The position numbers and the translations under genes are program-made. Below the pieces are notes generated by a model. That model saw only the letters and a list, made by a program, of their open reading frames with translations, was not told the DNA's origin and searched no databases. DNA of 64,000 nt from Adineta vaga (Eukaryota; Animalia; Rotifera), in contig CP075493.1 in assembly GCA_021613535.1 (NCBI GenBank), positions 5,828,001-5,892,000 on the forward strand. The letters are read 5' to 3'. This document shows positions 3,424 through 26,500 of the stretch, piece by piece. Within the stretch, counting starts at the first letter, position 1; the number at the start of each line of letters is the position of its first letter.

Positions 3424-6400
3424 GACAACCGCAATATTTCTTTCTTCATATAATCGCTCTTTTACATTCATAACATCACATTTACGAGAAGAAGAAACAA
3501 AGTTCGTACGTGTTTAGTCGAATCAACTGACATCTTCGTGCAAAGACGGTATGTATTACATTTTTGAAGTTCACAGTAAAGAATATAGCATAAATATGAA
3601 AAAGAGACGACGACGATGATGACGACAAAGAAGAAGAAAAGTGCAGACAGCAATACAAGTGAACAATATATGAATACCTTAATATTCATTAAATGATGAT
3701 TGATTGATGTTCTGACTTTTCATTAAAAGCAAAAGAATTCTTCGCAATCTATCGTGAACCTGTTCGTAGATGTTGTTATCAATTGATCATTACATAACGA
3801 GTTCGGTTCCTTCTTTCTCCTTCGTTGTAGTCAATTTGTTGATGTCTTTTCTTCTTAACATCTATGCACATATTTCTATGAATAATTTGAATCGGCCCAT
3901 TTAACTCTAGGAATCGAAGCAAATCTAAAAAGGAATGTTTTTTATGTCTTTGTATATATATATATATATAGATGAGAACTAACAAAGAGTACATAAACTC
4001 ATTTATGGTCGACAAGCTCCATAAAACGATATTAGTTATTCCGACAAACATTCACAAACACAGATGGATGTCTTTTACCTCTTGATTCACTAAAGCAATC
4101 AAAGTAATCGAACATGTATAAATTTAGACAGCTACTCTTTTCATGGCCAATAGGTTATCTAGATGACTTATAACTCAATCGTTTTTGCCTATTCTTGATC
4201 AAGATATGTCATATTAATGAGTAACATGCGTTTTTTTTGTATTTGTTTATTATTTTTTGATAAACTTTTTGATACTAAAGCAATTTACTATCATGTCTTT
4301 AACTTGTTATTTTTACACAACTACTTTATTTTTGTCAATATTATAAAGACATTTTAGTGTCCTTTTTTCGTTTATTTTCTTTTCTTTTTTTTTTCATCGA
4401 TACATATGTATTTTCGATCGAATTGAAAACGAGAAAGAGAGAGACAGAGAGAGAGAGGTAAGGAGAAAGAGAAAAAAGAAATGGAGGCGTTCGCACTATG
4501 AAACTCAATATGAGACCGCAACAACAACATAGACGAATGTTGATCGACCACACAAAAAGCCGTAAATCATGAGAACACAAACTCATTCTCAATACTAAAT
4601 AGAAGCGCGCGCGAGAATATATTTAACTATGAGAAGAGAATAGAATAGAATAGAATAGTAAGCTGACGATGAAATTATGATGGTGATTTTTACCGCAAAA
4701 ATTTTTCGTTCTCTTTTTCTGTCATTGTTTCGTTGTAAGTGACTAAAATTTTAACACGCATAAGTCGAACTTCAGTATACTAAGTGCGTTTATACTCAAC
4801 GGAGAGGAAGAATTTCTTTATGTATATATACGATTGATCAAGTAGAAAATAGATACACTTATAATGCAACTGTATATATATATATGCATGTGTTACCTGG
4901 ACTAGAACAACAACCATCTCGATTAAATACATAAGCGAAGTAGTGTAACACAAAGATAAACATAGTGCTGATTGGTCACGTAGTCGTTACATTCACCTGT
5001 AGGTATACTCCTAGTTTCAAGTGGCAAGAGAACGTGAGAGAAAGGGCTCTTTAGCTGGTTGAGCTGCTTATGCGCATAATAAGAAAGAGAGAGAGAGAGA
5101 GAGAGGGACAGAGTGTAGAAAAAAGAAATAAATGCAACTAGCAACAATCGATATCCATAGGGTTACCCTATAAGTTCGTTTGTTAGAGAGACAGACAAAC
5201 GCATGTGTCAATAAATGTTAAAATGAATGGAGGCGGTGAAGAATTCTTTCGAATAATATGTATTTATAATCTTGATGTTGTCAATAGATACTGATGGATG
5301 TCTCCTTGAGTAAAAAATAATTATCTCTCTATCCTATCTGTCTGTCACATATCTCATATTTCTTTGAAACAACAAGATTAACTCTTCGAACAATTCAACT
5401 GATTATACAAAAAAATTTTTTGTTTTCCTTTTCTCGTCTTTCTTTACTTTTCTCTCATGCTCTCTCACACATGTATTTTGTCGTTTAGTTTTATTGCGCT
5501 ATAAGAATAATCTCATTCGTATTTGAAGAAGAAACTAGAATACTAAATGCAGAAGAGAGAGAAGAGAAGAGAAAAGAAAAGAAAGGAAGAAACAGAATAG
5601 ACCATCATTCGCTCTCATCTTGTATGTTCTTTCTTCTTTAGAACTTTTTTCTCTTCATATTCACTGACAGAACAAACAGAATAGGTTCTCTTTTTCTCTT
5701 GTCGTCGCCATCTGAGCTAATAATTGACGAACGAGGAATAGGAGGAGTAAAACAGTGGTATATATGTGCATATGTAAATAGCAAAAACCGCACTGTTTCA
5801 TTCAGGAGTTTAATATTGTGCACATAGCTACTACCACCATTGTAACAACAACAACAACAACAACAACACAACATACATATGTATATACACAGAAGTAGTT
5901 TAAATACGTGCGCGTTATTTATTATTTTCTCGTTCTCATCGTCGTGTACACACATCGACGAATGAATGAGTAAATTCTAATTGCTAGCCATCACCACAGA
6001 CACCCACACCCGCATACCTTCTACCTTTTCTTTCTTTCTTTCTCTACCGTTATTCATCTTCGTCCTCTTCCATCATCTCCCCATCGTACTCTATACATAT
6101 ATGTGTTCTTTCTATTCTTTGTGTCGATCGTCATATCAACGGGAGAGAAAGAGAAAAAAAGAGAGGAATGTTGAGGAGGAGAATACAATTAGATTGTTGG
6201 CTGACTGACTGCCTAGCTGGCTGGCTATATGGATGGCGACCCGAAGAAGAGAAGGAAGAAAAGAAGCGTCGACTGATTATTCATGCTTCTCTCTCTTTCT
6301 CTCCTTTTTTTTTGAAACAACGCTTATATACGAACGAGCCAGGCAGGCGAGAGCATGAGAAGGCCCCGTTTGTTGATCTCTCGCATCGAACACATACATA

Positions 6401-6615
6401 TACACATTATCGAGAAGCAACTACTAGACAGAAACAGTATGTCCCACTAAATTCATTCAACTGTATCAGTAAAAGTCATCTGAATTAAAATACAAAAAAA
6501 AGACTTTTCATTTGACCTGTTTTCAATATCTAGATTATAAAATTCAATTGTTTTTATCGTTTCTTTTTCTTTTATAGCCTAATTTCTTCTTCTTATCATT
6601 AATCTATAACGTATC

Positions 6616-9600
6616 ATGGCTGATCGTGGTGATCAAACTGTTATTCGTCGAACAATAATCGAACGTGGCTTTCGAGCCGCTAATGATAGTCAACCTGGTG
6701 GTCGCGCTGCTGTTGAAGCAATGCGTAATTTTCATAATCAACATGAAGAAGAAAAACGTGAAATGCAAGAACTTAATACAAAATTTGGTGCTTATCTTGA
6801 TCGGGTTAAATTCCTTGAAACACAAAATCGTAAATTACAAGCCCAACTTGATGATCTCAAACAGAAATGGGGTAAGAATTCTTGAATGAATAAAAAAATG
6901 TATCAATTAAATGAAATCCTTTCTTTTTCCATTCAAGGTTTTGATTCGGGTAAAGTAAAAGAACAATATGATCAAGCATTGGTTAACCTACGAAAACAAA
7001 TTGATGATGTTACACGTGAAAAAGCTCTAGCTGAATTACGTGCTAAACGTGCTGAATATGATGCATCTTTAATCAAACATCAAACTGATTTTGCTAACGA
7101 ATTAGTGAATCTTGATCGTAATCGTTTTGCTATGCTTAAACAACAACTTGAAGGTAGTGGTTCAGAATTAGATGCTTTACGTGGTCGATTTGAAGATAAA
7201 AAACAAGAAATTGAACGAAGTAAAAATGAAGTCAAACGTCTCTTGGAACAATTAGAAAACTTGAAAAATGAGTTTGATAATGAATCAATGGCTCGTGTGA
7301 TGATTCAAAATGAATTACAAACTTTAGAAGAACAATTAGCTTTTATGAAAGCAATTCACGAAGAAGAACGTAATGAATTGGCTTCACTTGGCACATTACC
7401 GATTGATGTTAGTCAATTTTATCGAACAGAATTAACACGTGCTATTGCCGATATTAAGAATGATTTCGAAGCACTTTCACAAGCACAACGACGAGAATTA
7501 GAAGGTAAATTGTGATATCAAATAAAATGTTACATTTTTCTTTTTCTCTCTTCTTTTTCGTTTAGAATATTACAAGATTAAAACTGAGGAAATTCGTGAA
7601 CAAGCCGCTGAACAAAAACGTAAAATCGAAGAAGCACGTCGTTCTGGTGCTGTGGAAGTTATGGATTTATCTTCATTGAAATCTATGTTATCAGAAAATC
7701 GTGATAATTTTAATTCATTACAAAAGGAACATTCAGATTTATCCAATCATCTTCGACAATTAGAAGAAGATTTTGAACGAATTTCAGGCGAACATGGCCG
7801 AGCACAAAATGAACGTGATCGAGAATTAGCCGATTTACGTGCTCAAGCTGAACAACGTGAACAAGCTATTGCTGCTGTTTTGGAAAATAATGTTTCACTT
7901 CGATTCGAAATTAATACATACAGACGTTTACTTGAAGTTGAAGAAGGTCATCTTCAACGAGTTGAAGGTGGTGAAGGTTTTAGTTCAGGCGGACGAGGCT
8001 CATCGTCCTATCACTATCAAACAGGATCATCAGTTAGTGGTGGTGCTACAACTGGTCGTTTTGATAATCAAACAGCGGACGTTTCAACGAAAAAGATGAC
8101 CGTACAAAAATCGGCTCGAGGTTAGTTGATTTATACTCATGAAGATAAATTTCTTTTCTCGAATCTTATCATCATAATATATCTTTTAGAATATTATTTT
8201 TGAAAGAAACAGACATTCATATATTGACCATTTTATTTGAAACCCTATATATTGATAAATATTTCCCTATTATTGAATCCTTTATGATATTTCTTCTCTT
8301 TACGAATGTTGCTGTTGCTGCTGGAAGTCAATTCATATAATAATAACAATATGAAGCAGCATGTCCTTCCTGCACGAGATACTTGAGAACGAGACTCGTG
8401 TTATTTCGTTTGATCCCTGGTTATTTCTTTATCTCTGTCATCCCGCTCATTCGCTGATAATGATCATGATGAGACGTTTTGTTTGTTCCCGCTCATCTCC
8501 TTCTCCTACCGGCCAATTGCCCCTGTTTTTTCTTCTTTCTCTCTTCATTTTTTGTTCTGGCCAACGATAGTAAACATTTCTATCATTACGCATGATTAGT
8601 CGCAGATGGACGGTTATAATTACAATAAATGTCTACCAACTATTACATCTTGTTCTCATCTAATAATTAAAAATCACATTTTTTCAAATCACTGAACAAA
8701 CCATGAATGAATTCGACTAACTTTCATCTCGGATAATTTTCCGAAATTTGATTCAATCAAAAGCAGATTGGTTTCTTTTTTCTTCTTCTCCAATGTTTAC
8801 ATAGGCTACTCTTGACTGCATATTGTTTTATTTTTTCTGTTTAGACTACTAAAAATTAAAATCTTCCAACACAGACCTTCTCCTTTTTTTCGTTCTTAAG
8901 TATAATAAGTGTGAGCTTTGTTTTTTTTATAATCATTTTTTTTTGTTTTTTATTTGCTCGTCAAATTACACATAGCGGGAGCTCATGCTTTGAAAAAAAA
9001 ACATTCATATATATATATATATACATATATATCAATATCAATATATATAAATAAAAACCTTGATTATTTTCCTTTTTGCTTCACTACATTACGATGCATA
9101 ACTAATTATTAATTTATTCGTGTGTATCATTGATTAATTTAATATGTGTATTTTTTTTTTCAACACCGTCCACTGTCGCCGTCATCGTTTATTATTAGCA
9201 CGCATATTTTCACTTTATTTAATGCGTGAGATATTTCGTCTTCTAAATAGGCAAGCGTCTATAGTCTTCTGTCTCATATGACATTGAAGCAAAATATGAA
9301 TGAATATTAATCGAGTCATGTTTGAAAAACAAAACACTATTTCTATTTAGGTCCTATTGCTATTGATCAGGTAGATCCACAAGGCAATTTTATTGTCATC
9401 GAGAATGCTGGTTCAACAGGCAAAGATCAAGATATGAAAGGTTGGACATTACGACGTAAAATTGATTCCAAAGACGATATTACTTATAAATTTCCGGATA
9501 ATTTTGTACTTAAATCACGATCACGTATTCGTATTTTAAGTCGTAATGCAAGTAAAGGTTCAATCAATGAAAAAGAAACATTAGTAGCCGAAGGTGTTCA

Positions 9601-9688
9601 AACATGGGGTACAGGTTCGAATATGATTACACGACTTCTCGATGCTAATGGAGATGAAAAAGCTGTATTCAATCAGAGATTCCAATAA
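6616..9688 (+). CDS. Cytoplasmic intermediate filament protein, invertebrate type with lamin-tail domain
   Basis: Exons 6616-6871, 6938-7504, 7566-8120, 9351-9688. Coil 1A EKREMQELNTKFGAYLDRVKFLETQN; coil 2B end LRFEINTYRRLLEVEE; lamin-tail domain FIVIEN..MKGWTLRR..YKFP..WGTG; no CaaX. Confidence 0.95.
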
Positions 9689-11390
9689 ATAACATGATAA
9701 CAAAACTGAAATCCATTTTCGACGACGATCAAGAAAATACCGGCTCATCCTTTCTTTCTCTCTTTCTCTTTTTTGTCTTCTTTTTTTGTTCCTTTTATTA
9801 AATTAGAAATGAAATTCCTTTACCCTTATCTTGTCTGTTGGTTCTTTCTAGACATAGAAAAGTGTGTGTTTGTGTGTGTATTTGTGTGTTTTTCGTATCT
9901 AGACAATTTGTCTTTGACTGTTATTATTATATTATCAAACTCTTTTTTGTCTTTTTGAAATTCTGTGAAAATCCTCTTGTCTTTTCTCTCTCTCTCTCTC
10001 GTCTTTTGCCATCGAACACAAGATCATAACTTTTCTTTTTCATATATCTTTTTAGGTTAAACCGCTTTTATCTTCTCTTCAGTTTTTTTGTCATTTTCCT
10101 ATTACTACTCTGCTAATAAACCAGACACACACACATATGAATGTATTTGAAGAAAAATAAAGTACCGAACATGGCCATGTAGTTGTTTGTCTCTTTCTCT
10201 CTAAGTTTTTCTTCTTCTCTGTGTAAGGATTAGTTGTCAATTACTTTTGTGCGTGTTCGTTTTGTTTTTGTTTTCTTTGATGGGTTTAATCTACTACTGT
10301 GTTTTTGTCTATTATTTTTGATGTTTTCTTCTTCGTCTCTTGTATTTCATTTGTGCTGTTTGGAAAGATTCGTTATTCAGAAAATTCATGCGAAGAAAAC
10401 AAATACATTTTTGAAGAATACGAAACATGTCTTCGAATTGAATATTAATAAAAACCAAGAAGAGCAAAACCTTGAATATTTTGTTAAATATCATGGGAAT
10501 ATTTTCGAAAAGGTTATAGAAAGAATTTCATCTTTAAAACTCAGTAAGAAAATATCAACTATTTTCTGATTTGTTTGTCAATGTTACTAACAATGACATT
10601 ATCTGATAATTGCTATACGTATGATAAACTATCGACTGTTGACAATATCCTTGTTAAAAGAATAACAAGATACATCCTTGTCATTTCAATTGAATGAAAG
10701 TTATTAAGTGTAAAAAATGTTTTTGTATAAGAAGAATATATTAATCTGCAATTTGATTCAATAGGAAAAGGAAGAAGCACGAACTTTATTTATTTGCAAT
10801 TTGAGAACTGATAATATGACCATGAAATATGATCTTACGCACTTGCTGACAGAGATAAACAGTAACAACTGCTTTCCATACGTTTTGTGTTTAAGTTATA
10901 TCATTTCTAAGCAATAGATACTGTCATTTATATTTCAAATATAAACAAAACAAAAAAGGAAATTTTGCTGACTGATTAGATCAAATGAAAACGACAGATT
11001 CCAGTATTTCCATCAAGATTGTTCTAAGATATCGGTTTAGAATATTTCCCTATTTGTCAAAGAGAACACTGCTGACGTCTTTCTTGTTCGTTTTACAAGA
11101 ACGGAATTAAAATAATCCTTTCGTTCTAAATAATATCGAATTTCAGTTTGCTCACAAGGTAAAGTGCAGAAACTGATCTTTATATTAAATCAACATTATT
11201 TTTGAGTAGATATCAGTTCCAAAAAATCTCTCACATGATCGATAAGATCAATAAAATTTCTCATGTAAAGGTCACATAATTTGCTGTTCATAAACAAAAA
11301 AAATACATCACTAATTTTCTAACAAAGTTACCATTTATTTTGATGAAAATTTAGTTGAACAAATGCGCGTATTTTCATCTTCTATTCAAC

Positions 11391-12611
11391 ATGCTAAGTT
11401 TCTATCTTAGATTTGTGTTTCAATTCATTTTCATTATAAATTTCATCTTTAAGTTCCTTGAAGCAACAGAAGAACATTCGATAGTTATAGGGAATTTATC
11501 ATCTCGTAATCAATGTCATTCTAATTGGCATTATCTTTCGAATCAATCACTTTGTATTATATTTGCAACATCAGAAATAGGTGATGTTCGATGGTATGAT
11601 GGATATAAAGGATGTGAAAGTAATTCTGCACAACTTCTAACATTGACACATTCGAATAAATTGCAAACAATTGAAAAGAAAATCTATGAATTAGAAATAA
11701 ATAATCGAATTAGTTTGGATTATTTTCAACAAGGTGCTTGGATTGGAAAGGCGAGTAAGATAACTAGAATGAACTATGTTGATATTGATGCATGTTCTTA
11801 TATCTATATATAGAATGGTCAAATGAAGATTTATGTGATAGTAGAAGTACAACTATAGAAGATCTTCAATTCAATTGTATGATAGTAACAATGCGTTCAG
11901 ATGATCTATCATTATGTTTGAAAAGAGTTTCCTGCACAGAAGAACATCCATTTATATGTGAAAGTAAATATAAAATGCTCTTTTAAATAGACAAAAACTC
12001 GTTGATTTTGTTAGGTAGAGCATTGACGGAAGATGAATTGGTTGAAACTACAATGCAAGGGCGTCTTTCGTGGAGATGCATCATAAATGTTATATGGTGT
12101 ATCATCGATAGTGAATATAGAAAGAAGAAAGAAAAAGAAGCATTAGAAGCTCAAAAGGCTGAACTTCAAGCTTATATCACGCAATGTAAGTTTCGATATT
12201 ATGGAAAGATTCAGAAAAATACTATCTTCTTTATAGTTAATTTCGATATTCCTTCCGATACTGAATTATCCGGTAAGTTAACTTATTTATAAACTTAAAT
12301 TATAAAAAGGTAATTTATTCTTGAAGCAGAAAGCCCATCAGCTTTAATGGAACAAACAGATAAACCACTTGTAGTTGCAGGTAGTCGAATTTATAAAGTT
12401 AATGTTCATATTTCGAAATTCTTCTTCAGGTTTCGCCGTACCATCATGGATGATCTTAACTATCGGAACATTGGTATTTTTATGTATGATATGTTGCTGC
12501 TGTACAGCACTTATTTGTATAATCAAGAAATTAAGAAATAGACGATCTAGACGTAATCCAGCTAATCGTGATGGTAGTTTTGATTCAGTCTATTCGACTG
12601 TCTCAAGATGA
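11391..12611 (+). CDS. Type I transmembrane C-type-lectin-domain protein A
   Basis: Hydrophobic N-terminus; CHSNW..LC..WYDGYKGC..LL..AWIG..C..C..FICE lectin pattern across spliced exons; TM segment ending CMICCCC; basic tail ending SFDSVYSTVSR. Confidence 0.8.
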
Positions 12612-12722
12612 TGAATAAAATATTGAAAAAGTTTTCATTGTTCTTAATAAATTTCTGAATATATACGAAATTCGAAAAGATTTTAAGCGCGTGTTCAATT
12701 ATTATTATTATTATTATTATCT

Positions 12723-14168
12723 ATGTCATATATAACTGAGTTGTTTACATTTAATCTACTTGTGTTGATTCGAAATCATTATGGTAAGATAAATTAATGT
12801 GATTATAGATAATAGTTATGAATTAGTTAGAGCATTCAATGAAACTTGTGGTGGAAATAATCCACCTTGTATTGAACCATTGAAATGTATTGGTGGATAT
12901 TGTTTATGTTCACAAATTGCAAAAACAACTGATGCAAATAATCCACTTTCGTTCTGGGTATATTCTCTGATAAGTTTACAGATGATTTTAATTATTAAAA
13001 TTTTATTTTTAAAGGCAAATAAAGAATGTCATACATGTCCACTTGACTATACAACCACAGGTAAAAACTACTATTTACTTTTCTTTATCTTATTTCTGAT
13101 AATATATAATATAGGAACTAAGTGAGTGAAATATATCATATTATCAAACAAGATTATCGACGAAGATGATTTAGATGTTACAGTTTAGTATTAACTAAAG
13201 ATAGTCAATTGAATTGGGAACGTGCACGTGAACGTTGTAAAGAACATAATGGTGATCTTCTTGTCTTTCGTTCAGATGAAGAGGTAATATAGAAATAGAA
13301 CTATCATTTTTCAGACAACAAATTTCTTTTTATAGTATAAATTAATGATAGCAATCACTAAAGCTAATCAAAAAAATGTCGAGTACGTTCAACAATTGTA
13401 AAGTAAAGAAATTTTTAGTGTGATATATAGAATGCCTCAACGAGTACCACAGGACGGTACTTATTTTGGTAGTATATGGATTGGAGCTAGATTAGCTGAT
13501 TGGCGTGGTGATGGACGTTTCGATTTAGTTTCTCATGGACTACCACTAACAAAAAAAAATCAACATTGGTGGTAAGTTTAGTATTAGATCCCATCGATTC
13601 GTATTCTGTTGGACATATGTAGTGCAAAGTCTTCACTTCTTGGACATGAACCAAATTTTGTTCAATTAAAAGCAACTGGTGAACGTCAAGCCTGTCTTGG
13701 TTTAGCTTTTTTCCAAGATGGATCTGTTTGTATGCATGATTGGTTTTGTAGTTGGGAATCGTACACTCTTTGTGAAGTTCGTAAGTGAATGCGTCGTTTA
13801 AAATTAACAAATACCTATTGTTATATATATATATCTAAGATCCTCCAGCACCAGAAACAAGTACAGGTATTGAAAAAAAACTGTTTATGTCTTATTTAAC
13901 ATACAACCATGTTTTTTTCTACCATAGGAGCACTGCAAGCATTAGAAGGTATGATTAGATAGTTTTGCTTCGATTGATATTGAAGTCTTCTGCAGAAAAA
14001 CCAAGTAGTGGTATACCATCATACATCATTATTGGTGTTGTTGTACTCGTTTTTTTGGCATGTTGTATTGGTGCATTTTATTATTTACGCAAGAAGCAAA
14101 AGATTCGTGGACGTACTCAATCATTTGATTCAACGGAAAGTGGCATGTCTCGAAATTCCGCTTATTAG
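12723..14168 (+). CDS. Type I transmembrane protein B: Cys-rich (EB-like) module + C-type lectin domain
   Basis: Spliced translation CPLDY..KCY..WERARERC..GDLL..IWIG..HEPN..ACL..MHDWFC..LCE; TM IIIGVVVLVFLACCIGAFYY; tail SFDSTESGMSRNSAY. The start codon is uncertain. Confidence 0.8.
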
Positions 14169-14639
14169 TTCTTAGCTGTTTGAGATAACAAATATAAAAT
14201 CTAATAAATACGATTCCATCTTTCGGTAATATAAAGTACAGAAGAGTTCAATTACATGTCGAATAAGAATGTCTGAGATGCATTTCTTTATGAATAAACG
14301 AATGCATAAAGATCGTAAGAATATTTGATACAGTTTCAGCTCGTTTGATTAACACGACCTAATATGGTAAGTTAGTCTTGTTCGACGAAGAATATCATAT
14401 TTAATCATATCAGTGTTGGAATTTTTACCATTCGAATGGTTGTTTTATATGGCTGAGAGGAAAAAACAACTACAATTTTCCTTGCTTTCTGTGTTTTTAT
14501 CCATTTCATTTATGAAAAGAACGGGCGAGGCGGTGGTTTTTTCCCCAGAATAAAGTTGGATAAATCCGATTTCACTCCTTCGTTCTATATAAATTCTCAT
14601 AGTTTAGAATGATAGATTTCTCAATCATCCACTTTATCA

Positions 14640-15282
14640 ATGGCTGGTACAAATAAATTGAATAAAGCTCTTTGGACAAATATTACTGAACTCAAATTAA
14701 TGAACAAAGAAGATACACCTATAAAATTCCTGTTTGATAAATCACCATTTGGTGATGATGATGATGATGACGATAGACCTGAGACAGAACAGACAGAATA
14801 TACAATTATTGGACGGATATTACCAAATTCTGATATATTTAAAGAAAGTGCATTTCAGATCGAAATGAAATTAACAAATAGGTATCCATTTGAACCTCCT
14901 GAAGTAAGATTTCTGACTCCGATCTATCATCCAAATATTACTAAAGATGGTAGGTAAATAAGAGAGTTCTGACAAATTCATATAGATATTTCAAATAATT
15001 TAAGGTAAATTTTGTCATGCATTACTAATGAGAACTGCGCGTTGGAAACCGAACACGACTCTAGTCGAAGTAGTCAAAGCTGTTGTCGAACATATTGATA
15101 ATCCAGATATTGACTATTCTGTCAATCATGGTTAGTAATCTTAATTATATGTGGAACTTTTTCATATAGGTTTTCGAAACTGTTTTTATATAGACATTGG
15201 GAAAGAATATACAGAAAGAAGAGAAGAATTCAATCGTAAAGCTTTAGCTATGATCAATAAACATAAATTATCACGAAACTAA
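14640..15282 (+). CDS. E2 ubiquitin-conjugating enzyme, UBE2L3-like, copy 1
   Basis: 3 exons; YPFEPP.VRFLTPIYHPNITKDG|KFC with catalytic Cys; WKPNT; poly-Asp insert. Confidence 0.9.
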
Positions 15283-16655
15283 AGAATGAATACTCTTAAC
15301 GACATGACATTTTTTGGCCATTATGAATGAATACGAAATAAATTTTCTAAGTATCTATATCAAGTAATAAAAACAGTACAAGATTCACTTGACAAATCAT
15401 TCTCATGACTTTGGTATGTTATTCTTTATTTCATAAATTGATCGTAATAATATGATTGAATACTTCTAATTTACGTTCATTTGATTAAGATAACGACTAT
15501 AATAGTTTTTGAATATAATTCTACAGATTGAATTACGAGTTACAACCACAATTGATTCTTTTTTGTATAATTTAATAAATCGTTCTATTGAATTATATTA
15601 GTATCATCTTTATGATGAAGAAAGATAGAAATTTGATTTACTTTTCTTCAACAACAACGTTAACAACTAGTGTGATTGATGATTAAACATTCGGAAAATA
15701 TTACAATTGTCAATTTAGTTGATAGTATTGTATCTATCGCATATCAATTTCTAATTTGTATGTTATCATAAATTTAACAAACATGTATTTGATTGATTTT
15801 TCACGCATCAATCAAAGATACGAATAACAAATCACTGTTTAAGTGTAAATTCAAACTTCGTTTAACATACTGTAAAACTATCAATTAAAACACGATAGAT
15901 CATATCTGATATTTTGATAAGCGACATCATTAAAAACTTTTGCTGTATTTAATGAGCAACATTGTCATATGTATTCAGATAAACACAAAGAATCCGTTCG
16001 ATAATCTACAAATGATGTTAAACATATAGAAATGTTTTTGAAGTACAATTACATATCTATTTTATATTGTGTCGAAAAATAAAATGAGTTTTTGCATGTA
16101 CACAATGATTCGAATTCTTTTTCTTATTGTTGTTGTTGGATATAGGCGAATCGTGAAATCGTTTTATTGTTTCTCTAATTTAGTATTTGAATTCTTTCAA
16201 ATGTACCCTTTTGCGTATAGAGTACAGTATGATCGTTTGATTTATTTACTGTCTTATTACGCATGTTTATTCCGAGAAATTTGAAGTGTATATAAGAAAG
16301 GAACGAAAAATTTTGACGCGATGTAATATCACATGAATTACATTTTCTAAAGAGAATAAAATTCGCTGGTGTTGCTAGTGAGCTGATTATACTACAAAAC
16401 AGAAGCAACATACTTGTTTTCGATGTTTCTAACCAGGATTTTTATCTTACATTTTCGTTTTATAATAACGTCTGCAAGTTACAGGTAAGAAGAAAAATAA
16501 GTCATGATTATTCGTGTACTTTGTTGATGATGAGAATGATAGAATCGTTTCAGTATGAAAGAGTACCTTTTTTCTAGGTTGATACTAGTTAGAGACAAAG
16601 CGAAAAAGAAGGTCAAATGATTTCAATGTTTGACGGTTTTTTTTAGATTAAAAAA

Positions 16656-17296
16656 ATGGCATCATCAGTATCACCGGGAGGATTGAACAAAGATCTTTAT
16701 ACTGATATAACTAGATTGAAATTATTAGATAAAGATGGTGCAGAAGTAAGATTTAAATTATTTAAAACACCATTTAGTGGTGAAGAAGAAGATGATGATT
16801 TGGATAGTCAAACCCGACAAGAATATGTGATAACTGGTTTGATCTATCCGAATTCGAAAATCTATCAAGAGCGTGCATTTGAGATCGAGATTAAATTATC
16901 AACAACATTTCCGGTTGATCCTCCTACTGTTCGTTTTCTTACTTCAATGTATCACCCCAATGTTGCTGAAGATGGTATGTAGAAATCAAATAGTTTGCTT
17001 TCAATTATATTGTTATTTATAGGTGATTTTTGTAATGAATTACTAACAAAAACTAATAAATGGACATCAAAAACATCGTTAGTTGAAATTATTAAAATAG
17101 TTGTTCAACATATCGATGAACCTGATGATACCAATCCAATTCGACCAGGTTAATAATTAACTTGATTCAATCATTTTTAATCTAAATATAATTTATTTTC
17201 TATTTAGCTGTGGGTGTTGAATATAAAAATGATCGTGCTCTGTTCGAAAAGAATGCAAAAGAACATGTTTTGAAATATGGTCAACCACGTACCTAG
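16656..17296 (+). CDS. E2, UBE2L3-like, copy 2
   Basis: 3 exons; FPVDPP..MYHPNVAEDG|DFC; ends FEKNAKEHVLKYGQPRT, similar to the UBE2L3 C-terminal helix. Confidence 0.9.
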
Positions 17297-17899
17297 ATTT
17301 CTTTTATCAACATTCCAATGATCGATAAAAGACATTTTTAATAAGTTACCTTAACCAAACACACTCATACCTAACCTTTTTTTTATAAATAGTTATCAGC
17401 TTCTATTGATCAAAGTATTAAACACTAATAAAATCTGGAATTAACATGTATCGATTTTCTTATACTATGTTCAGAAGTAATTGCCGATTGAGTTTGGTAA
17501 CATCTGTTGAGTATATGATCTTGATCTTAATGCATAATTCAACCATTCTTCAAAATTTTACATTGTAAGCAAACATAATCCTCCGAATCACAAAAGTGTT
17601 TCTTTTCAATATGTATTTCGATCTGTTATTTGTTTTCTCTAGTCAATTGATTATTCGTACGCGAATTTTTTCGTCATAATCGTATTTGTATTGACTAATA
17701 TTTCTGTGAATAATCACATACGTATTCATGTACAGTTACTTTCTCAATACTAATATATCTTCTCTTTCATTTTTCTCTTATATTCTGCACTTGAAAACAA
17801 TCTAATTAGTATGATGGAAATATCCTTAAATAAAGTAATACTATAAATACTAAAGAGCAGCACTAAATCGTACGATTGTCCTGTTTCTGATCGTTAAAT

Positions 17900-18528
17900 A
17901 TGGCTCAACAAAAATTGAATCAGTTACTCAAAACACAGATCAGTGAATTAAAATCATTCGCAAATGCAAACGATGCATCCGGCATATTTATCCTGGATAC
18001 AATCTCGTGTAGTGAAGAAGAAATAGAAAATCTAGTGGAACCACAAGAACATACTATTTGTGGACGAATCTTTCCAAAGTCAGCTGTTTTCAAAGATAGT
18101 GCATTTAAAATTGAAATCAAACTATCAATGTTTCATCCATTTTATCCACCTAAAGTGCGGTTTCTTACTCCAATCTATCATCTAAATGTTAGTAAAGATG
18201 GTAAGATCGTTTTCAAAACTGTACAAACGAATAATAATATATGTTTATATTTCCATTTAGGTGAATTTGATCATGAATTGTTACAAAAAACAGCACGATG
18301 GTCCAATAATACATCTTTAATAGATGCTATCAAAGCTATTGTTGATCGTATTGATAATCCTGAAATATATTCTGCGTTAAATAATGGTATTGTACATTGT
18401 TAAGATTAGATAGCATGACATTTTTCTTGCATTTTTTTTATATAGATGCAGCAAAAGAATATATGGAGAATCGTGATGAGTATACTCGGAAAGTATTGGA
18501 AATAGTACAATCTCAGGCATTGCACTAA
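17900..18528 (+). CDS. E2-fold protein, copy 3, lacking the catalytic Cys (UEV-like)
   Basis: Same two intron positions as the paralogues; YHLNVSKDG|EFDH (HPN to HLN, Cys to Asp). Confidence 0.85.
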
Positions 18529-19129
18529 CATTGAATTCACTATTTCGTTTACATAATCGAGAATATACATCGTTGATGAATGGATATATCAAGAGTCTTA
18601 TACATTTTAATCATGATTTAAATATATTGAGTACATGTCTAGCATAATTTTGTTTTTCTTATCTTTGATAATAAAGAAAAATAATTGCGATTCATTAATG
18701 AAAAATAAAGACTATTTTTGACATATAGACAATTTTAATTTGAATTCTCTAAGCCAATTTTTTTGCAATTTAGTAACATTAATCAAATAAAATCGATGAT
18801 ATTGATTTGAAAAATAAAATGTTTTTATAGTAAGACTCGTTAGCTTTTCTTTTTCTCTATGCTATCTACCTTAATTACAAATAGGTTTTCATTGGTTTAA
18901 TATTTCAGCCAATGAAAAAAGTAGGTTTTTTTGTTTTAGAAATGTATTCTATGTTGGAAATTTCTTCGTATGGTGACATTGCATAAATATTATATTCATC
19001 ACTTTTGAAGAAAGAAATAAATAAAAAGAGTAATTTTTTTATTATTTTCAGTATTGCATATATCGAGCTGGGGAAAAGATTCATAGAAAATCATGTTATT
19101 TCTCTCTTGTTTTTGTAGATTGTTGCAAA

Positions 19130-19766
19130 ATGTCTGACTCAAAACGGACGGTGTTGATTTACAAAGAAATGGCTAGATTAAAACTGTGTAACAAAGATAA
19201 TGGACCAGTACGATTTTTACTTGAAAAATCACCATTTAATGATGACGATGACGATGATGATGACGCATGTAAAAGCGTAGACTCAAAAGAATGTTCAGCC
19301 ATTGGACAAATATTTCCAATTTCTGAAATGTACAAGGATGCTGCTTATCGAATTGAAATCAAACTGTCAACAACTTATCCACTCACTCCACCTGAAATCA
19401 AGTTTCTTACTCCAATTTATCATCCAAATGTGGATCCAGAAAGTGGTTAGTAAAAGTATAATGTTTAGTTCAAAATTCTATGTCTCTTTATAGGAGTTCT
19501 TTGCGATGCTTCAATACTTACTACTGCTACATACACACCAAAAATGTCATTAGTCGATATTATTGAAGCTGTTATAAAATGCATTGATGAACCTAATTGT
19601 GATAAACCTGTTCGAGCAGGTTGGTGTAGTCTTATTGTTCGCTAGTTTCTTGAAGAAAAACTTTCCTTTTCTTTCTTTAGCATTGGGCGTAGAATATGTC
19701 AATGATCGAGCAACATTTAGTAATGCTCAAATGGAAGCTAGGAAAAGCGGTTTACCTCGTACATAA
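19130..19766 (+). CDS. E2, UBE2L3-like, copy 4
   Basis: 3 exons; YPLTPP..YHPNVDPES|GVLC; poly-Asp insert; ends KSGLPRT. Confidence 0.88.
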
Positions 19767-20290
19767 GCTTTTCCACACATTTCTCTTCTTCTTTGCAAAC
19801 GTGAACAATAAAAACACTAATATAATTCATTTTCTTTGATTGACACCAATTCGAATTTATCCTGAACATATGTTCATATATCACTCCATTTATTTTCCTA
19901 TTATTTTTTTGTAGTTCACTAGTTATCATATATTAAACACTACAATGTCATTATTTCTTACACCATCTTCAATGTAAAATCATCTGTATTAAAATTTTGT
20001 TCTATTCACGAAATTATCCGAAGGAATATGTTTAAACTGTAGAACATTTTTGAGTTTATTCGATGATTTGAAAATAAACGGAAGTAGCAGCCAAAAATGT
20101 ACCTGCACACATGATCGACGATAAAAACAAAACTTCTCTAATGATGTCGCTGGTGCCGGTCTCTTTTTGCATTCGCTTTACAATTGAGCGAATTACATCC
20201 AAGAATTGAGTTTTTTTTTTACTACTACTCAGAATTTTTAATACATTCCATTGCGAAGTATTACTTGAATTTATTTTGGATTACAAGAAA

Positions 20291-20926
20291 ATGGCTGAAT
20301 CGAAATTGAACAAAGTTCTTTATACACAAATCACTGATTTAAAACTCTGTAATAAAAAAGAACCACCAATGCGATTTATACTCGAACAATCACCTTTCAA
20401 CGATGACGACGAGGATGATGATTGCAAACCAAGTACTGCCAGTACTACTGATAAAGAATATTCAGTTATTGGACGAATATTTCCAATATCTGAAATATTT
20501 AAAGAAGCTTCATATAAGATTGAGATGAAATTATCAAAAACATATCCTGTCACACCACCTGACGTTCGTTTTCTGACACCTATTTATCATCCAAATGTAG
20601 CAAAAGATGGTATTATTCATTTTTCTAAAATGACTCCCTAATATTCAGATGTTTTGATCGAGGTGCATTTTGTCATGAACTATTAAAAAAACAGTGGAAT
20701 GGGAATTAAAGACAACTTTGATCGATGTAGTCAAAGCTGTTGTTAATCGAATTGATAATCTGGATGTTGAATATTCGTTTAGTCCCGGTACGTCATTTGT
20801 TTTTGATCAATTTTAGAATTATATTATGACTTTTTAGAATTGGGCAAAGAGTACAATGACAATCAAGAAGAATTCAAAGGTAAAGCAGCAGAGTTTGTTC
20901 GAAAACATGGATTAGCACGAGATTAA
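20291..20926 (+). CDS. E2, UBE2L3-like, copy 5 (1-nt frameshift in exon 2: pseudogene or assembly error)
   Basis: YHPNVAKDG|AFCHELLKK then a premature TAA. Adding one A to the A7 run at 20685-20691 restores TVEWELKTTLIDVVKAVV..KHGLARD*. Confidence 0.8.
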
Positions 20927-22053
20927 TTTATCTTAATCAGAGACTTCATGTGTTGTATTGATCTTGATTTCTTCATTTACTGAAAACGCATATTCTCATT
21001 CACGTTCTCTCCTGTAATTATTATTATTTTAAATAAATAAAAAAACAAACGATTTTTTAGTCTAATTTTGTATTGAATAGGATTGGATTCGATATTACGA
21101 TGGATAAAGTCACAAACGTTGGTTTTCTTCTTTCTATCATTTGCTAATGACTCAAAATAGAAACCAATCGTTATTTACTTTATTTACTTTCGTATAAAAA
21201 CTCATATCATGTTCCGATTATCAACATAATTTCCATTTATCGTAAATTTAAGTGATGTTCTGAAAGAATTAGTCGATCATTCTGATTGGAACTCCTTAGT
21301 TAACGAAGGTTTGAGTTTTGGTTTGTGTGTATTTACTCAATTATATTTTGAATTTTTCAAGTGTTTATTCTTTCTGTCCAAAACATTTTACAAATGATAA
21401 TTGCGTTTAATTAGCTATCAATTCTACATTGAGAATAATAAAAATAAGAAGAATCATACGTTTGTCTATAATATGTGAGAGTCATCAAAACGATTGAAGT
21501 ATATTTCAATTGATTTAATTATGGTTTTAATCGTTTCAGATTCTTAGTAGTGTTAGAAAACAACATTAGTTTCTATTTTCATATCGAATGCAGCGACGTT
21601 ATTCCATTGGTTAACATATTGTTCTCATCATTCGTTCTTTTTTTAATATATATATATACATTGTGTCATTTGGTTGTTTTTTCGAGAAAAATCCAATTTT
21701 ATGTTTTTCTTTTCTTTTTTTCTATTTAAAAAAGCAAATTTTTATACTCAGCATACATCTACTCGACAGCTTCTTTTTTTCTCCAACTTCTTCACATTAT
21801 TTTCGTATTTGTTATTAATACGATAGCTCTAAAGAGAGAATTGCACAATCGCTCGGAAATTCTCTCTTGAGTAATAATTATTTTTACAGGTATAGTTATA
21901 TCTACATTAAAATCTATAGACACCTACTTCAGAAAAAAGAACGAAGTCCATCCCTCGTAGAGTCACAAGGCGTAAAACTATAACAATCAAATGGCGAATA
22001 GTTAATAAAAATTCCAGTTTTTTCTTTTCCTTTTTAGATAAAAAAAAATTATC

Positions 22054-22605
22054 ATGGCAGGATCGGGAACGAACAGACGCATATTAAGTGAATTAACTAG
22101 ACTTCAAGGTTTATCAACAAACAGCGACGTGAAATTTCTTCTTGATAAATCACCTGCAGATGATCCTTCATCAAGTTTAATTCTCGGAAGAATTTTACCA
22201 AAATCAAACATTTACAATCAGGCAGCTTTTCAGATAGAAATTAAATTGCTACCAGAATATCCATTTAAAGCACCTGAACTTCGTTTTATTACACCAATTT
22301 ATCATCCAAATGTTGATGATAAAGGAAAAATTTGTGTTGATATACTCAATGCAAATGATGGCTTTAAACCAACAACACCTTTAACAGATGTTGTCAAGGC
22401 TGTCACTAATTTGATTGATAATCCAAATATCGATCATGCACTTAGTCCTGGTATGTAATTGCTTTTAAGAAAATGAATGTTTATTTTAACTTGTTTTTCT
22501 CTATTGTTTTTTAAAGAAATTGCTGCCGAATACACACAAAATAAGTCCACATTTGAACGTAAAGCATTAGATATGGTAAAAAAACATGGTTTACCACGAC
22601 AATAG
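22054..22605 (+). CDS. E2, UBE2L3-like, copy 6 (most canonical)
   Basis: 2 exons; AFQIEIKLLPEYPFKAP..IYHPNVDDKGKIC..FKPTT..IDHAL..EIAAEY; no acidic insert. Confidence 0.92.
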
Positions 22606-22946
22606 ATATAAAAAAGCTAACTTTCCACGTTTTTCTTTTTCTTTCTTCCGGTTTGTCTCTTCTTCTTTTTCAAATAATTGTTGTGTGATTTCAATATGTA
22701 AAAGAAAAAAAAATCGTGTTCATGCTTAATATCTTATTCATTTTCTTTGAATATTCAAACAAGAGATCAGTATTGATTTTTTATTATTGATGATTTATAG
22801 AAAAATAAAGAACAAAAGACGTCACATGACGATGTTGTGTTTATTATTTACAGAAAAAACTTTCATTCACTTGAAATAAGTGTGAATACGATTCTTAAAC
22901 TTTGAGTCATTCAATGACATGAACTAACTATATACATCTGTTTTAG

Positions 22947-23456
22947 ATGGCATCAAAACATATACGTTTACTGAAAGATCTCGCACATATTGATGAAACA
23001 TTTCAATCCAATCGATTATTTTTTATTAAGAAAAAAATCGATGCATCAACTTGTGATGCAATTCATGAAACAGATTTAACGCATCCAATATTTATCTATA
23101 CACCACAACAATCGCCTTATATCGGTGGAGAATTTGAATTAGAAATAAGTCTACCACTTGATTATCCATCGACGACACCACGTGTGAAATTTCGTACACC
23201 AATTTATAGTCCAATTGTTGATGAATCAGGTGTAATATCATGTTTACCTATACTTCAACGATGGCAATCATATCCAATTAGTTCCATTCAATTACGAGAT
23301 ATACTTGTAGAAATTGATTATTATATAACACATTTAGAAGATGTTGATGAACCTCATCGACCAGCTCTACTTATCGAATGGAATGATGATCCGACAAAAT
23401 TTACGAAAACAGCTGAACAACAAACGAAAGAATTAGCTAAACCACAAAAACGATAA
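22947..23456 (+). CDS. Divergent intronless E2-fold protein, copy 7
   Basis: SPYIGGEFELEISLPLDYP..PRVKFRTPIYSPIVDESGVISCL: UBC fold with HPN replaced by SPI and a Cys retained near the active-site position. Confidence 0.85.
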   Translation: MASKHIRLLKDLAHIDETFQSNRLFFIKKKIDASTCDAIHETDLTHPIFIYTPQQSPYIGGEFELEISLPLDYPSTTPRVKFRTPIYSPIVDESGVISCLPILQRWQSYPISSIQLRDILVEIDYYITHLEDVDEPHRPALLIEWNDDPTKFTKTAEQQTKELAKPQKR

Positions 23457-23555: not shown

Positions 23556-26500
23556 ATGAGTGAACTTGATATGAACGAACAAATGACATATGCCACGGCG
23601 ACATGGCGTGTGTTTGATGAAATTACGTACAAGTATGTTTTCATTCGAATGTTAGAATTTCAGTTTATTGAAGAATACTTACATCTAGCTAGATATCTAT
23701 GAAGATGAGGAATTCTCGATACTGTTTGTTTTTCTTTTAGGAAAATGGAAACAAGTAACATCACTGATTATTCAGCTCAATTTCGAGATACTCGTAGTTC
23801 AACGGGAGATACAATCAAACCATTTGTTGCTATGGCTCCGTGCGGAGGACCAATTGGTAAGGACTAAAATGATATTCAAATATATGTGATATAATATTTC
23901 TGTTCATATAGCATTTGTTTATAAAAGACCATCACTAAATACAAATGATGTTAAATATACAATAATAATACAAAATTTACCAAAACCTGGAACTAAACTT
24001 AAAGAAGTAATCAATGTTTGAAGTATTTAAAGAAATTCCTTTATTTTTCAATGCCTGTTTAGTTTGATCGTGGAGTTATTATACTTGTCGATTGGACAAT
24101 TAACGAAGATTTATTATTAGTAACTGAAGATGGTAAATATCATATTATTAATATCTTTCATTATAATACAAATAATGATGTATCCAAACAACTCGGCGAA
24201 GTGAGTTATCTCGTAGAATTATTTCATTCGAATATCTTTCGTTTGAATCTTCTAGTCCGTATCAACCATCAGCAGTGCATGTACATTTAAAACAACTCAA
24301 GGTACCGGTTTAGTTGTTTTCACTAAAAATCAAGAAAGTTTCACTACTGTGAAAAACGTCTACAGTCCAATCATTCAAACCATATCACTTGGTAAGATGA
24401 AATAATTATTCGACTCATTCGATTCTATTCAAACACATTTAGGTGCCGATCTTCGTTCACCAATTTCAGCGTGGTGTGTTATTGATCATGCTGACCTTAC
24501 TATTGCCTATGCATATGATAATGTTATAACAACATGTGGTGCAACGTCAAGACGAGATCAAGTAGAATGAGAATTTTCTATTCTTTTCGAAAACGAAATA
24601 GATTCAATTTTTTTTCTTGCTTATAGCAAACCATTCCGGGAATTACAGATACAATTATTAAATTAGTATCAAGTAGTAATTATAAAAGTATAGCTGTATT
24701 ACGAGATAATGGTGAAGTATTCATTGGTTTAAAAGAAAATATTGGATATCCACAATCATTTGTATTAAAATATGCTAATAGTACTGATAAAGTCAAAATT
24801 ACAGATATTGCTTGGTATGATATCTATATATTTGGAATGCTTTTTTTTGGATAGAAAAAGCTTTCATTAAGGTCTGCATCTGATACAGTCATTGGGATTC
24901 GATCAAGTTCAAAAACTTGGTTTGATCTATTGATTATCAATGGAAAACATTCACAACCGATGAGGTTTGCATTTTTTTGTTGCTGTAGTTCAATCAATAC
25001 TAAATATCTGTTTTTTAGTGAGAAAAGTCGACAAGCAATTACTGATGATACGTGAGTACTGAATATTTATCTATCCTATTCATTAAAGATCATGTTTAGT
25101 CTTTGTTATACATCTCCTGTTTGGTTATCAACTGAAATCGATGGTATTCGAATTATTTCCGGTCGAACACTTGATTTCTTTCAACGTTTACCAAATGAAC
25201 TTTATAGTGTCTTTCATTTAATGTCCGATAGTCCTGGTGCTAAACTTTATTCTGCTTATATGAATTATAAAGTAATCAATTCTATCAAAAGATTCTTTGT
25301 CAATATTATTAAAACATTTCTTTAGTATCAAAATCAAATGGCTGAAATGTTATTGAGTCAATTGAAATCATCTCGAACGACAAATTCACTTGAAGAAGCT
25401 GTTAAACAATGCATATCAGCAGCATCCAATGAACATGATCCATCAATTCAAAAGATTCTTCTTAAAGTAAAACAGTGAATAAAAACCATGACAATTTTGA
25501 AATTTCATTTTCTCCAATAGGCTGCGCTTTTCGGCCGTTCATTTCTCTGTGTTAATTTAAATAATCCCAAAACATCTGTGCGTCCCACAGTATCCGTTAT
25601 CAATGATTTATGTACAAATACAATTCGTAATTTACATCTAGTCAATAATTTACAACATATTAACATTTCAATTCCAATAACATATAGACAGTTTGTTATT
25701 CAAGATTTGTTTTCTATCTTTTATAGAATTTATTTGTTTCAGATTTGAATTACTTGGTACACGTATTCTAATAGATCGTTTACTTCGTCGTAATTTACAT
25801 GATTTTGCTACACGTGTAACGAAATTATTACGTATGCCACCAGAAGAAGGTGAAAATCGAATTCTAGTACAATGGGCTGTACAAGAAGTTTGTAATTGAA
25901 AGATTTATTCAATAGATTTCTAATCAATCATATTTAGCTTAATAATCCTGCAAATACAAATGAAGAAATAATTGCTGAAACGATCAAAAAACGTCTTGCT
26001 GATGTGCCTGGTATCCCATTTATCGATATTGTCAAAGCTGCAAATCAAGCAAAGAAATATATTGTTGCCGAACGAGTATGTAAAAGATATTTGAAAAGAA
26101 ATTCTTTACAATCGAATGTTTTTCAATTTAGTTATTAGATGTAAAAGTTAGTCTTAGTGATCAAATTGATATGTTATTAATGTTAAATAAAAGACAAGAA
26201 GCTTTACAAAAAGCACTTGCTTGTGGTGATACTGATTTAGGTAAGAAATCGATTTTCTTTCTGAAAGATTTATTTTTCTATTTCTCTAGCTCTTTTTGTC
26301 TTGATGAGAATAAAATCGAGTGGTGATGTTAATCTCACTGATTTTAATTTACAATTAGCTAAATTAAAAACATTACCATTGAATTTATTATTACAAGTAA
26401 GAAAAATCGTAAAATAGATAATAATGTCAATTGATTTGTTAGTGTTTGGAAGAACGTGATCGAAATAATTTACATAATGAATTGAGAAAACAAACTTCAA

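Follow-up and report, generated by a model that had tools for sequence, protein, structure and literature searches.

The genes of ubiquitin-conjugating (E2) enzymes are as a rule few in number, scattered over the genome and highly conserved, and expansions of the class are known in lineages other than the one described here. UBE2L3 (UbcH7; Ubc10 or 'E2-18 kDa' in insects) is a specialist E2 for cysteine-dependent ligases of the HECT, RING-between-RING (RBR) and RNF213 types, and F63 and K96 are its main ligase contacts in the UBE2L3-E6AP and UBE2L3-RBR structures. UBE2L6 (UbcH8) is a vertebrate-only duplicate of UBE2L3 that serves ISG15, and the UEV and other pseudo-E2 proteins (UBE2V1/2, TSG101 UEV, COP10) have the UBC fold and lack the active-site cysteine. 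Here we analyse an array of seven E2 genes at 5.84-5.85 Mb on chromosome 1 of Adineta vaga, a bdelloid rotifer. The array lies in a 64,000-nucleotide stretch (C1:5828001-5892000), hereafter the window, in whose coordinates positions are given unless another sequence is named. The genes, named E2_1 to E2_7 in their order along the forward strand, occupy positions 14640 to 23456. The first six belong to one UBE2L3-derived clade restricted to bdelloids, in which an acidic loop was gained, ligase-contact residues changed and, in one member, the catalytic cysteine was lost. We found no description of this family in the open-access papers searched.

The relationship of E2_1 to E2_6 to UBE2L3 rests on four lines of evidence. 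In a maximum-likelihood tree of 70 E2s, 41 rows of the bdelloid family, including E2_1 to E2_6, made up one side of a branch (support 99/98). The split placing the UBE2L3 references and the family on one side, and UBE2T, E2_7 and 15 other A. vaga E2s on the other, received 95/89 (99 in a quick tree), in a tree with an assumed root and few references (four UBE2L3 and five UBE2T). Protein Data Bank (PDB) entries matched by E2_6 were, in order, UBE2L3 (E = 7e-20), UBE2L6, with a nearly equal score, and UBE2T. The AlphaFold (AF2) model of E2_1 has a normal UBC fold, with a predicted local distance difference test score (pLDDT) of 87.9 and a predicted template-modelling score of 0.83, and its top PDB matches in Foldseek were UBE2L3 molecules in complexes with RNF213, HHARI, HOIL-1, parkin and WWP1. 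Finally, insect UBE2L3 searched against the A. vaga genome gave its highest identities with E2_6 (49%) and with a copy on the ohnologous chromosome 4 (C4:7280263, 50%), and this search returned no closer UBE2L3. E2_6 and UBE2L3 are thus reciprocal best matches between the genome and the PDB, a relation that E2_6 alone in the array shows. Because they are the best genome matches to insect UBE2L3, E2_6 and its chromosome-4 ohnologue are probably the bdelloid co-orthologues of UBE2L3.

An exhaustive HMMER search with E2_6 returned only 12 cluster representatives below 1e-30. The named top matches were all bdelloid (Adineta, Rotaria, Didymodactylos), and the first named match from outside the group was a mussel protein with 40% identity, followed by insect UBE2L3 with about 45%. 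Two claims of a first-pass annotation made from the window's letters, that six copies are UBE2L3-like and that they form a lineage-specific set, are therefore upheld, the first by the agreement of PDB matches, genome search, tree and Foldseek, and the second by the bdelloid origin of every named close relative. That annotation had also named an outcome that would count against it, namely each copy being the orthologue of a different standard E2, and the single clade in the 70-E2 tree rules this out. An origin from UBE2T, hinted at by exon-1 matches, was likewise rejected: the whole-protein trees speak against it, and a search of the genome with insect UBE2T yielded no better UBE2T-like match and no specific partner.

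The family shares with UBE2L3 the UBC fold and, in most members, the HPN motif and the active-site Cys, has it as its top sequence and structure match and stands in the same tree group, but identity to UBE2L3 is only 24-50%. The bdelloid proteins also carry an insert of about 7-25 residues and have Asp, Ala or Glu in place of Pro at position 88, and they are encoded at no fewer than about 20-26 A. vaga loci arranged in tandem arrays, as opposed to one gene. UBE2L6 resembles them in being a lineage-restricted UBE2L3 duplicate, but it arose by an independent duplication and works with ISG15, whereas A. vaga shows no dedicated E1 or modifier. UBE2T is nearly identical to E2_1 in the stretch around the HPN motif and is the best PDB match of exon 1 alone; the likeness is local, however, and in the whole-protein tree UBE2T has its own branch (99/99).

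All seven genes match the PF00179 (UQ_con) profile, with scores of 36.5-87.2 bits against a curated cut-off of 27 bits, which confirms the seven co-oriented UBC-fold genes of the first-pass annotation. The G+C content of the window is about 30% and introns are short. Models of E2_1 to E2_4 with GT-AG splice sites have three exons and two phase-1 introns (48-63 nt) at conserved positions and encode 169-177 residues. E2_1 (14640-15282; exons 14640-14949, 15005-15130 and 15194-15282; 174 residues) resembles UBE2L3, has the acidic loop and retains Cys, HPN, F63 and K96. Cys and HPN are also kept in the acidic-loop proteins E2_2 (16656-17296; exons 16656-16974, 17023-17148 and 17208-17296; 177 residues), with Val at position 63 and Thr at 96, and E2_4 (19130-19766; exons 19130-19445, 19494-19619 and 19681-19766; 175 residues), with Leu and Thr. 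Between these two lies E2_3 (17900-18528; exons 17900-18200, 18261-18386 and 18446-18528; 169 residues), a pseudo-E2 with Asp in the place of Cys, HLN in that of HPN, and an intact open reading frame and introns. E2_5 (20291-20926; exons 20291-20609, 20663-20787 and 20838-20926) is intact apart from a second exon of 125 nt. E2_6 (22054-22605; exons 22054-22450 and 22517-22605; 161 residues) is the least derived member, has a short loop insert and lacks the first intron. E2_7 (22947-23456; 169 residues) is intronless. Three NCBI proteins are identical to our models: I4U23_001852 to E2_1, I4U23_001855 to E2_4 and I4U23_001857 to E2_6 (P0290, P0160 and P0001 in our set). These served for the full-length searches, while for the spliced models each exon was searched separately. 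Joined models of E2_2, of E2_3 and of E2_5, the last with X written at the frame break and split codons, entered the alignments and trees. The pseudo-enzyme, the frameshifted copy and the non-canonical intronless E2 noticed at first sight are all real by these models and by the residue comparison below, and the mutual divergence of the copies is confirmed by exon-1 identities of 35-60%.

Compared with UBE2L3, every member has an insert in the β1-β2 hairpin, of about 7 residues in E2_6 and about 7-25 across the family. In E2_1 to E2_5 the insert is 15-20 residues long, consists chiefly of Asp and Glu, and is a low-confidence part of the model; in E2_1 it spans residues 35-53, between strands 29-34 and 54-61. 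This acidic segment is probably disordered. The active-site Cys is present in E2_1, E2_2, E2_4, E2_5, E2_6 and E2_7 and missing from E2_3, and the HPN motif is found in E2_1, E2_2, E2_4, E2_5 and E2_6, with HLN in E2_3 and SPI in E2_7. At the two main ligase contacts, the residues from E2_1 to E2_6 are F, V, F, L, V and F at position 63 (Phe in UBE2L3) and K, T, S, T, E and K at position 96 (Lys in UBE2L3). Both contacts are thus kept in E2_1 and E2_6 and both are changed in E2_2, E2_4 and E2_5, E2_3 being changed at 96 only; E2_6 retains F63, K64, K96, P97 and H119. Two further sites bear on reactivity, since Asp residues at the equivalents of positions 88 and 119 make UBE2D lysine-reactive. 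Position 88 (Pro in UBE2L3) reads A, E, E, A, E and D, and position 119 (His in UBE2L3) reads Y, N, S, K, Y and H. Pro88 is therefore found in none of the six proteins, His119 only in E2_6 and Asp119 in none, and the Pro88/His119 pair of UBE2L3 occurs in no member.

The family is large. The A. vaga genome contains 120 exon-level matches to PF00179, and about 26 loci with family members were found by a search with E2_1. Among them is a second array, seven copies long, on ohnologous chromosome 4 (C4:7280260-7290864; loci L001 and L002). One of its copies has internal stops (6535-6798 on the reverse complement), and two others (7688 and 9641) form a recent tandem pair with 88% amino-acid identity, a dS of about 0.15 and a ratio of nonsynonymous to synonymous substitution (dN/dS) of 0.3-0.4. 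Outside A. vaga, a 1.16 Mb bdelloid metagenome contig (L005) carries, in the same order as the window, five derived copies, homologues of E2_6 and E2_7, and Vps16. In Rotaria magnacalcarata (L006) an E2_3-type copy is followed by E2_6, E2_7 and Vps16; R. sordida has both E2_6 and E2_7. In the window the Vps16 exon (25092-25325, forward strand; Vps16_N, 41.5 bits) anchors this synteny downstream of the E2_6-E2_7 pair. Arrays of the chromosome-4 type occur in both A. ricciae and R. sordida, where they contain an inserted Sas10/Utp3 gene. Copy number varies among species and between the two A. vaga arrays.

A tree of exon 1 recovered orthology groups across Adineta and Rotaria. E2_1 paired with a dispersed R. 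sordida gene (75-76% identity), E2_2 with the copy at 5051 of the metagenome contig L005 (dN/dS about 0.20) and E2_3 with the copy of R. magnacalcarata; E2_4 and E2_5 were sister paralogues, and E2_6 split into a pair of ohnologue lineages, both of which include Rotaria members. Because of the ohnologous array and these cross-genus groups, we place the origin of the array, and of the majority of its paralogues, before the split of Adineta and Rotaria; at least the E2_1 and E2_6 types are older than the bdelloid genome duplication as well. A recent explosive diversification is ruled out by this old paralogy. Estimates of dN/dS by the NG86 method lay between 0.10 and 0.42 in 15 of 15 pairs, E2_3 included, values that are rough because dS is saturated in most pairs. 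They indicate purifying selection in all pairs tested and weigh against neutral evolution, another outcome set against the initial proposal. As for rate, the E2_6 ohnologues have an identity of 68-71%, and that between E2_1 and the chromosome-4 copy nearest to it is about 60%, while six other A. vaga E2 ohnologue pairs, used as a yardstick, are 79-98% identical. By this comparison we judge the family to be faster-evolving than other A. vaga E2s, yet constrained. The earlier description of the copies as fast-evolving thus holds to the extent that the family outpaces other E2s (60-71% versus 79-98%), but their divergence is largely a matter of age.

E2_3 has an orthologue in R. magnacalcarata (L006, 7398-8002) with His at the Cys position, HPS in place of HPN, and its reading frame and intron positions intact. 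Because the cysteine is gone in both Adineta and Rotaria while the frame is intact and dN/dS is about 0.23, we take E2_3 to be a conserved pseudo-E2 that lost its cysteine long ago and was retained as a gene. It shares with the UEV proteins the state of a Cys-less UBC-fold protein under purifying selection, but it arose inside the UBE2L3-like clade and is unrelated to the UEV families. Three Rotaria members of the family (P0351, P0079 and P0085) have Ser at the Cys position, and the loss of the nucleophile is therefore recurrent. The case of E2_5 is of another kind. Its exon 2 has 125 nt in place of the 126 of the other copies, one A being missing from the run at 20685-20691, directly 3' of the Cys codon (20671-20673); the sequence downstream is still conserved, and the sister protein from A. 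ricciae (P0141) is unbroken at the same site. These features suggest that the shift is an error of the assembly or that the break is very recent.

E2_7 stands apart. It scores 69.6 bits against PF00179, and a protein-atlas search returned a UQ_con-like protein. Its predicted model has a pLDDT of 39.5, from a shallow alignment of close homologues, so that the assignment of its fold rests on sequence only. In the 70-E2 tree its group forms a clade of its own (100/100) on a very long stem, with no close standard class. The 23 bdelloid homologues are 73-88% identical to it and constant in length; Cys99 is invariant, SPI stands in place of HPN in 24 of 24 sequences, and a DVDEPHRP block is conserved. 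In E2_7 the Cys is followed by a CLPI motif. With a dN/dS of 0.10-0.25, and kept beside E2_6 and Vps16 throughout bdelloids, E2_7 is best described as an orphan bdelloid E2, separate, slowly evolving and unrelated-looking, that has the Cys and lacks HPN. A genome search found no second copy in A. vaga. None of the database proteins returned was identical to E2_7, the best having 88% identity, although homologues are annotated in Rotaria; the A. vaga annotation may lack this gene.

The reading we favour, and judge reasonably probable from the residues and the relatives of these proteins, is that the Cys-bearing copies are transthiolating E2s that have been rewired or subfunctionalised, accompanied by a dead member of UEV type. 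The window holds one of two ohnologous arrays of a bdelloid-specific E2 subfamily descended from a UBE2L3-like ancestor, with E2_6 as the conservative member, probably doing the ordinary UBE2L3 job, and E2_1 to E2_5 as old paralogues that gained the acidic β1-β2 insert. The Cys-bearing copies would be charged by a single pair of UBA1-type E1 enzymes and would pass ubiquitin by transthiolation to cysteine-dependent ligases of the RBR or HECT types. The paralogues would have partitioned or changed their E3 partners, and we infer such a change for E2_2 to E2_5; E2_3 would act as a non-catalytic partner or competitor, in the manner of a UEV. The A. vaga genome has two loci with an E1 UFD domain (one ohnologue pair) and, as candidate E3 partners, about 27 HECT loci and about 50 IBR loci, the last a number that looks high and for which there is no calibrated comparator. 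The co-expansion of HECT ligases proposed as a check is not seen at about 27 loci.

Several points weigh against the reading of rewired E2s. A branch with the UBE2L3 references as one of its sides occurred in just 64% of 200 bootstrap trees. Asp at position 88 of E2_6 is UBE2D-like, and reactivity towards Cys only should therefore not be assumed. The change of partners by E2_2 to E2_5 is drawn from a comparison of residues, the IBR count has the limit just given, and the individual NG86 values are erratic. Lastly, the E2 copies are known here from genomic sequence, and the transcription of each is presumed.

Three other explanations can be weighed on the same evidence. The derived copies could serve a ubiquitin-like modifier of their own, or an immune or stress pathway, as UBE2L6 does with ISG15, and the annotation had leaned this way in proposing a lineage-specific conjugation module for ubiquitin or a ubiquitin-like protein, possibly for defence or stress. 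The nearly equal scores of UBE2L6 and UBE2L3 against E2_6 would fit, as would the position of the insert, given that the β1-β2 loop selects the E1 in Ubc9 and Ubc12. In A. ricciae, moreover, two gene models (P0135 and P0280, of 703 and 914 residues) combine an NAD:arginine ADP-ribosyltransferase domain (PF01129/PF03496) with an E2 of the family that is C-terminal and 48% identical to E2_6; they may be true fusions or pairs of merged gene models. But the UFD-bearing E1 genes number one ohnologue pair, with no E1 expansion, the array contains no modifier gene, and the presumed gene identifiers FUN_001852-001858 were not found among the supplement entries of three A. vaga papers on desiccation, radiation and spaceflight (PMC12220480, PMC10809525 and PMC10665377), weak evidence in that the correspondence of I4U23 to FUN numbers is assumed and the files may be truncated. 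We have no evidence as yet that links the array to defence or stress, and we consider a private pathway quite unlikely. A more inclusive scheme is, in our estimate, similarly improbable: the single UBE2L3 of other animals would have given rise to a bdelloid family of at least 20 members, forming private E2-E3 pairs with an enlarged RBR set (the roughly 50 IBR loci), and these, with Cys-less regulators and some ADP-ribosyltransferase fusions, would make up a lineage-specific network of signalling by ubiquitin and ADP-ribose.

The repeated loss of the cysteine, where E2_3 and its group have Asp or His and the three Rotaria members Ser, together with the altered E3-contact residues of E2_2 to E2_5, could mean that several derived copies besides E2_3 are E2-like scaffolds or decoys, comparable to UEV proteins or COP10. 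We hold this to be unlikely, for Cys and HPN are kept in E2_1, E2_2, E2_4, E2_5 and E2_6 and in most orthologues. It is very unlikely, in our view, that the extra copies are simply redundant products of a nearly neutral process of birth and death, heading for loss and devoid of distinct function: the stops in one chromosome-4 copy, the frameshift in E2_5, the differing copy numbers between species and arrays and the fairly high dN/dS of the recent chromosome-4 pair would agree with such a process, but the orthology groups have persisted between Adineta and Rotaria with frames and intron positions intact, and dN/dS is well under 1 in every pair. The significance of the finding is moderate, since neither the fold nor the chemistry is unusual, other lineages too have E2 expansions, and no phenotype has been tied to the array. 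The radiation of UBE2L3 into old tandem arrays is a natural experiment in the evolution of E2-E3 specificity, one that combines altered ligase contacts with a newly gained acidic loop and with dead copies that have been conserved, and it points to unstudied ubiquitin biology in an extremely stress-tolerant animal.

Upstream of the array, on the same strand, lies a lamin-like gene (6886-9688) with an intermediate-filament rod (PF00038) followed by an open reading frame resembling a lamin-tail domain. Next come two genes (11355-14175, forward strand) that resemble C-type lectins by eye, in their cysteine patterns and WIG-type motifs, and whose products both close with one transmembrane helix and a basic tail; the two reading frames scanned in them had no Pfam match. 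These lectin-like neighbours, after which the annotation had placed the proposed module, lie outside the conserved synteny, in which the constant neighbour is Vps16.

Elsewhere in the genome, at C4:9657165-9659743, about 2 kb separates IBR matches from a UQ_con match contained in a 1105-residue open frame of the opposite strand; an RBR-like gene here adjoins a giant E2-domain gene. At C3:5237481-5237993 (L023), an intronless, full-length acidic-loop member in a single frame of 199 residues resembles an intact retrocopy. E2 genes in general seem to be numerous in A. vaga. A second expansion consists of many intronless UBE2D-like genes, 60-79% identical to one another and partly clustered, for example at C3:19.31-20.03 Mb, C1:13.99-14.03 Mb and C5:15.61-15.62 Mb (L009-L018 and L024).

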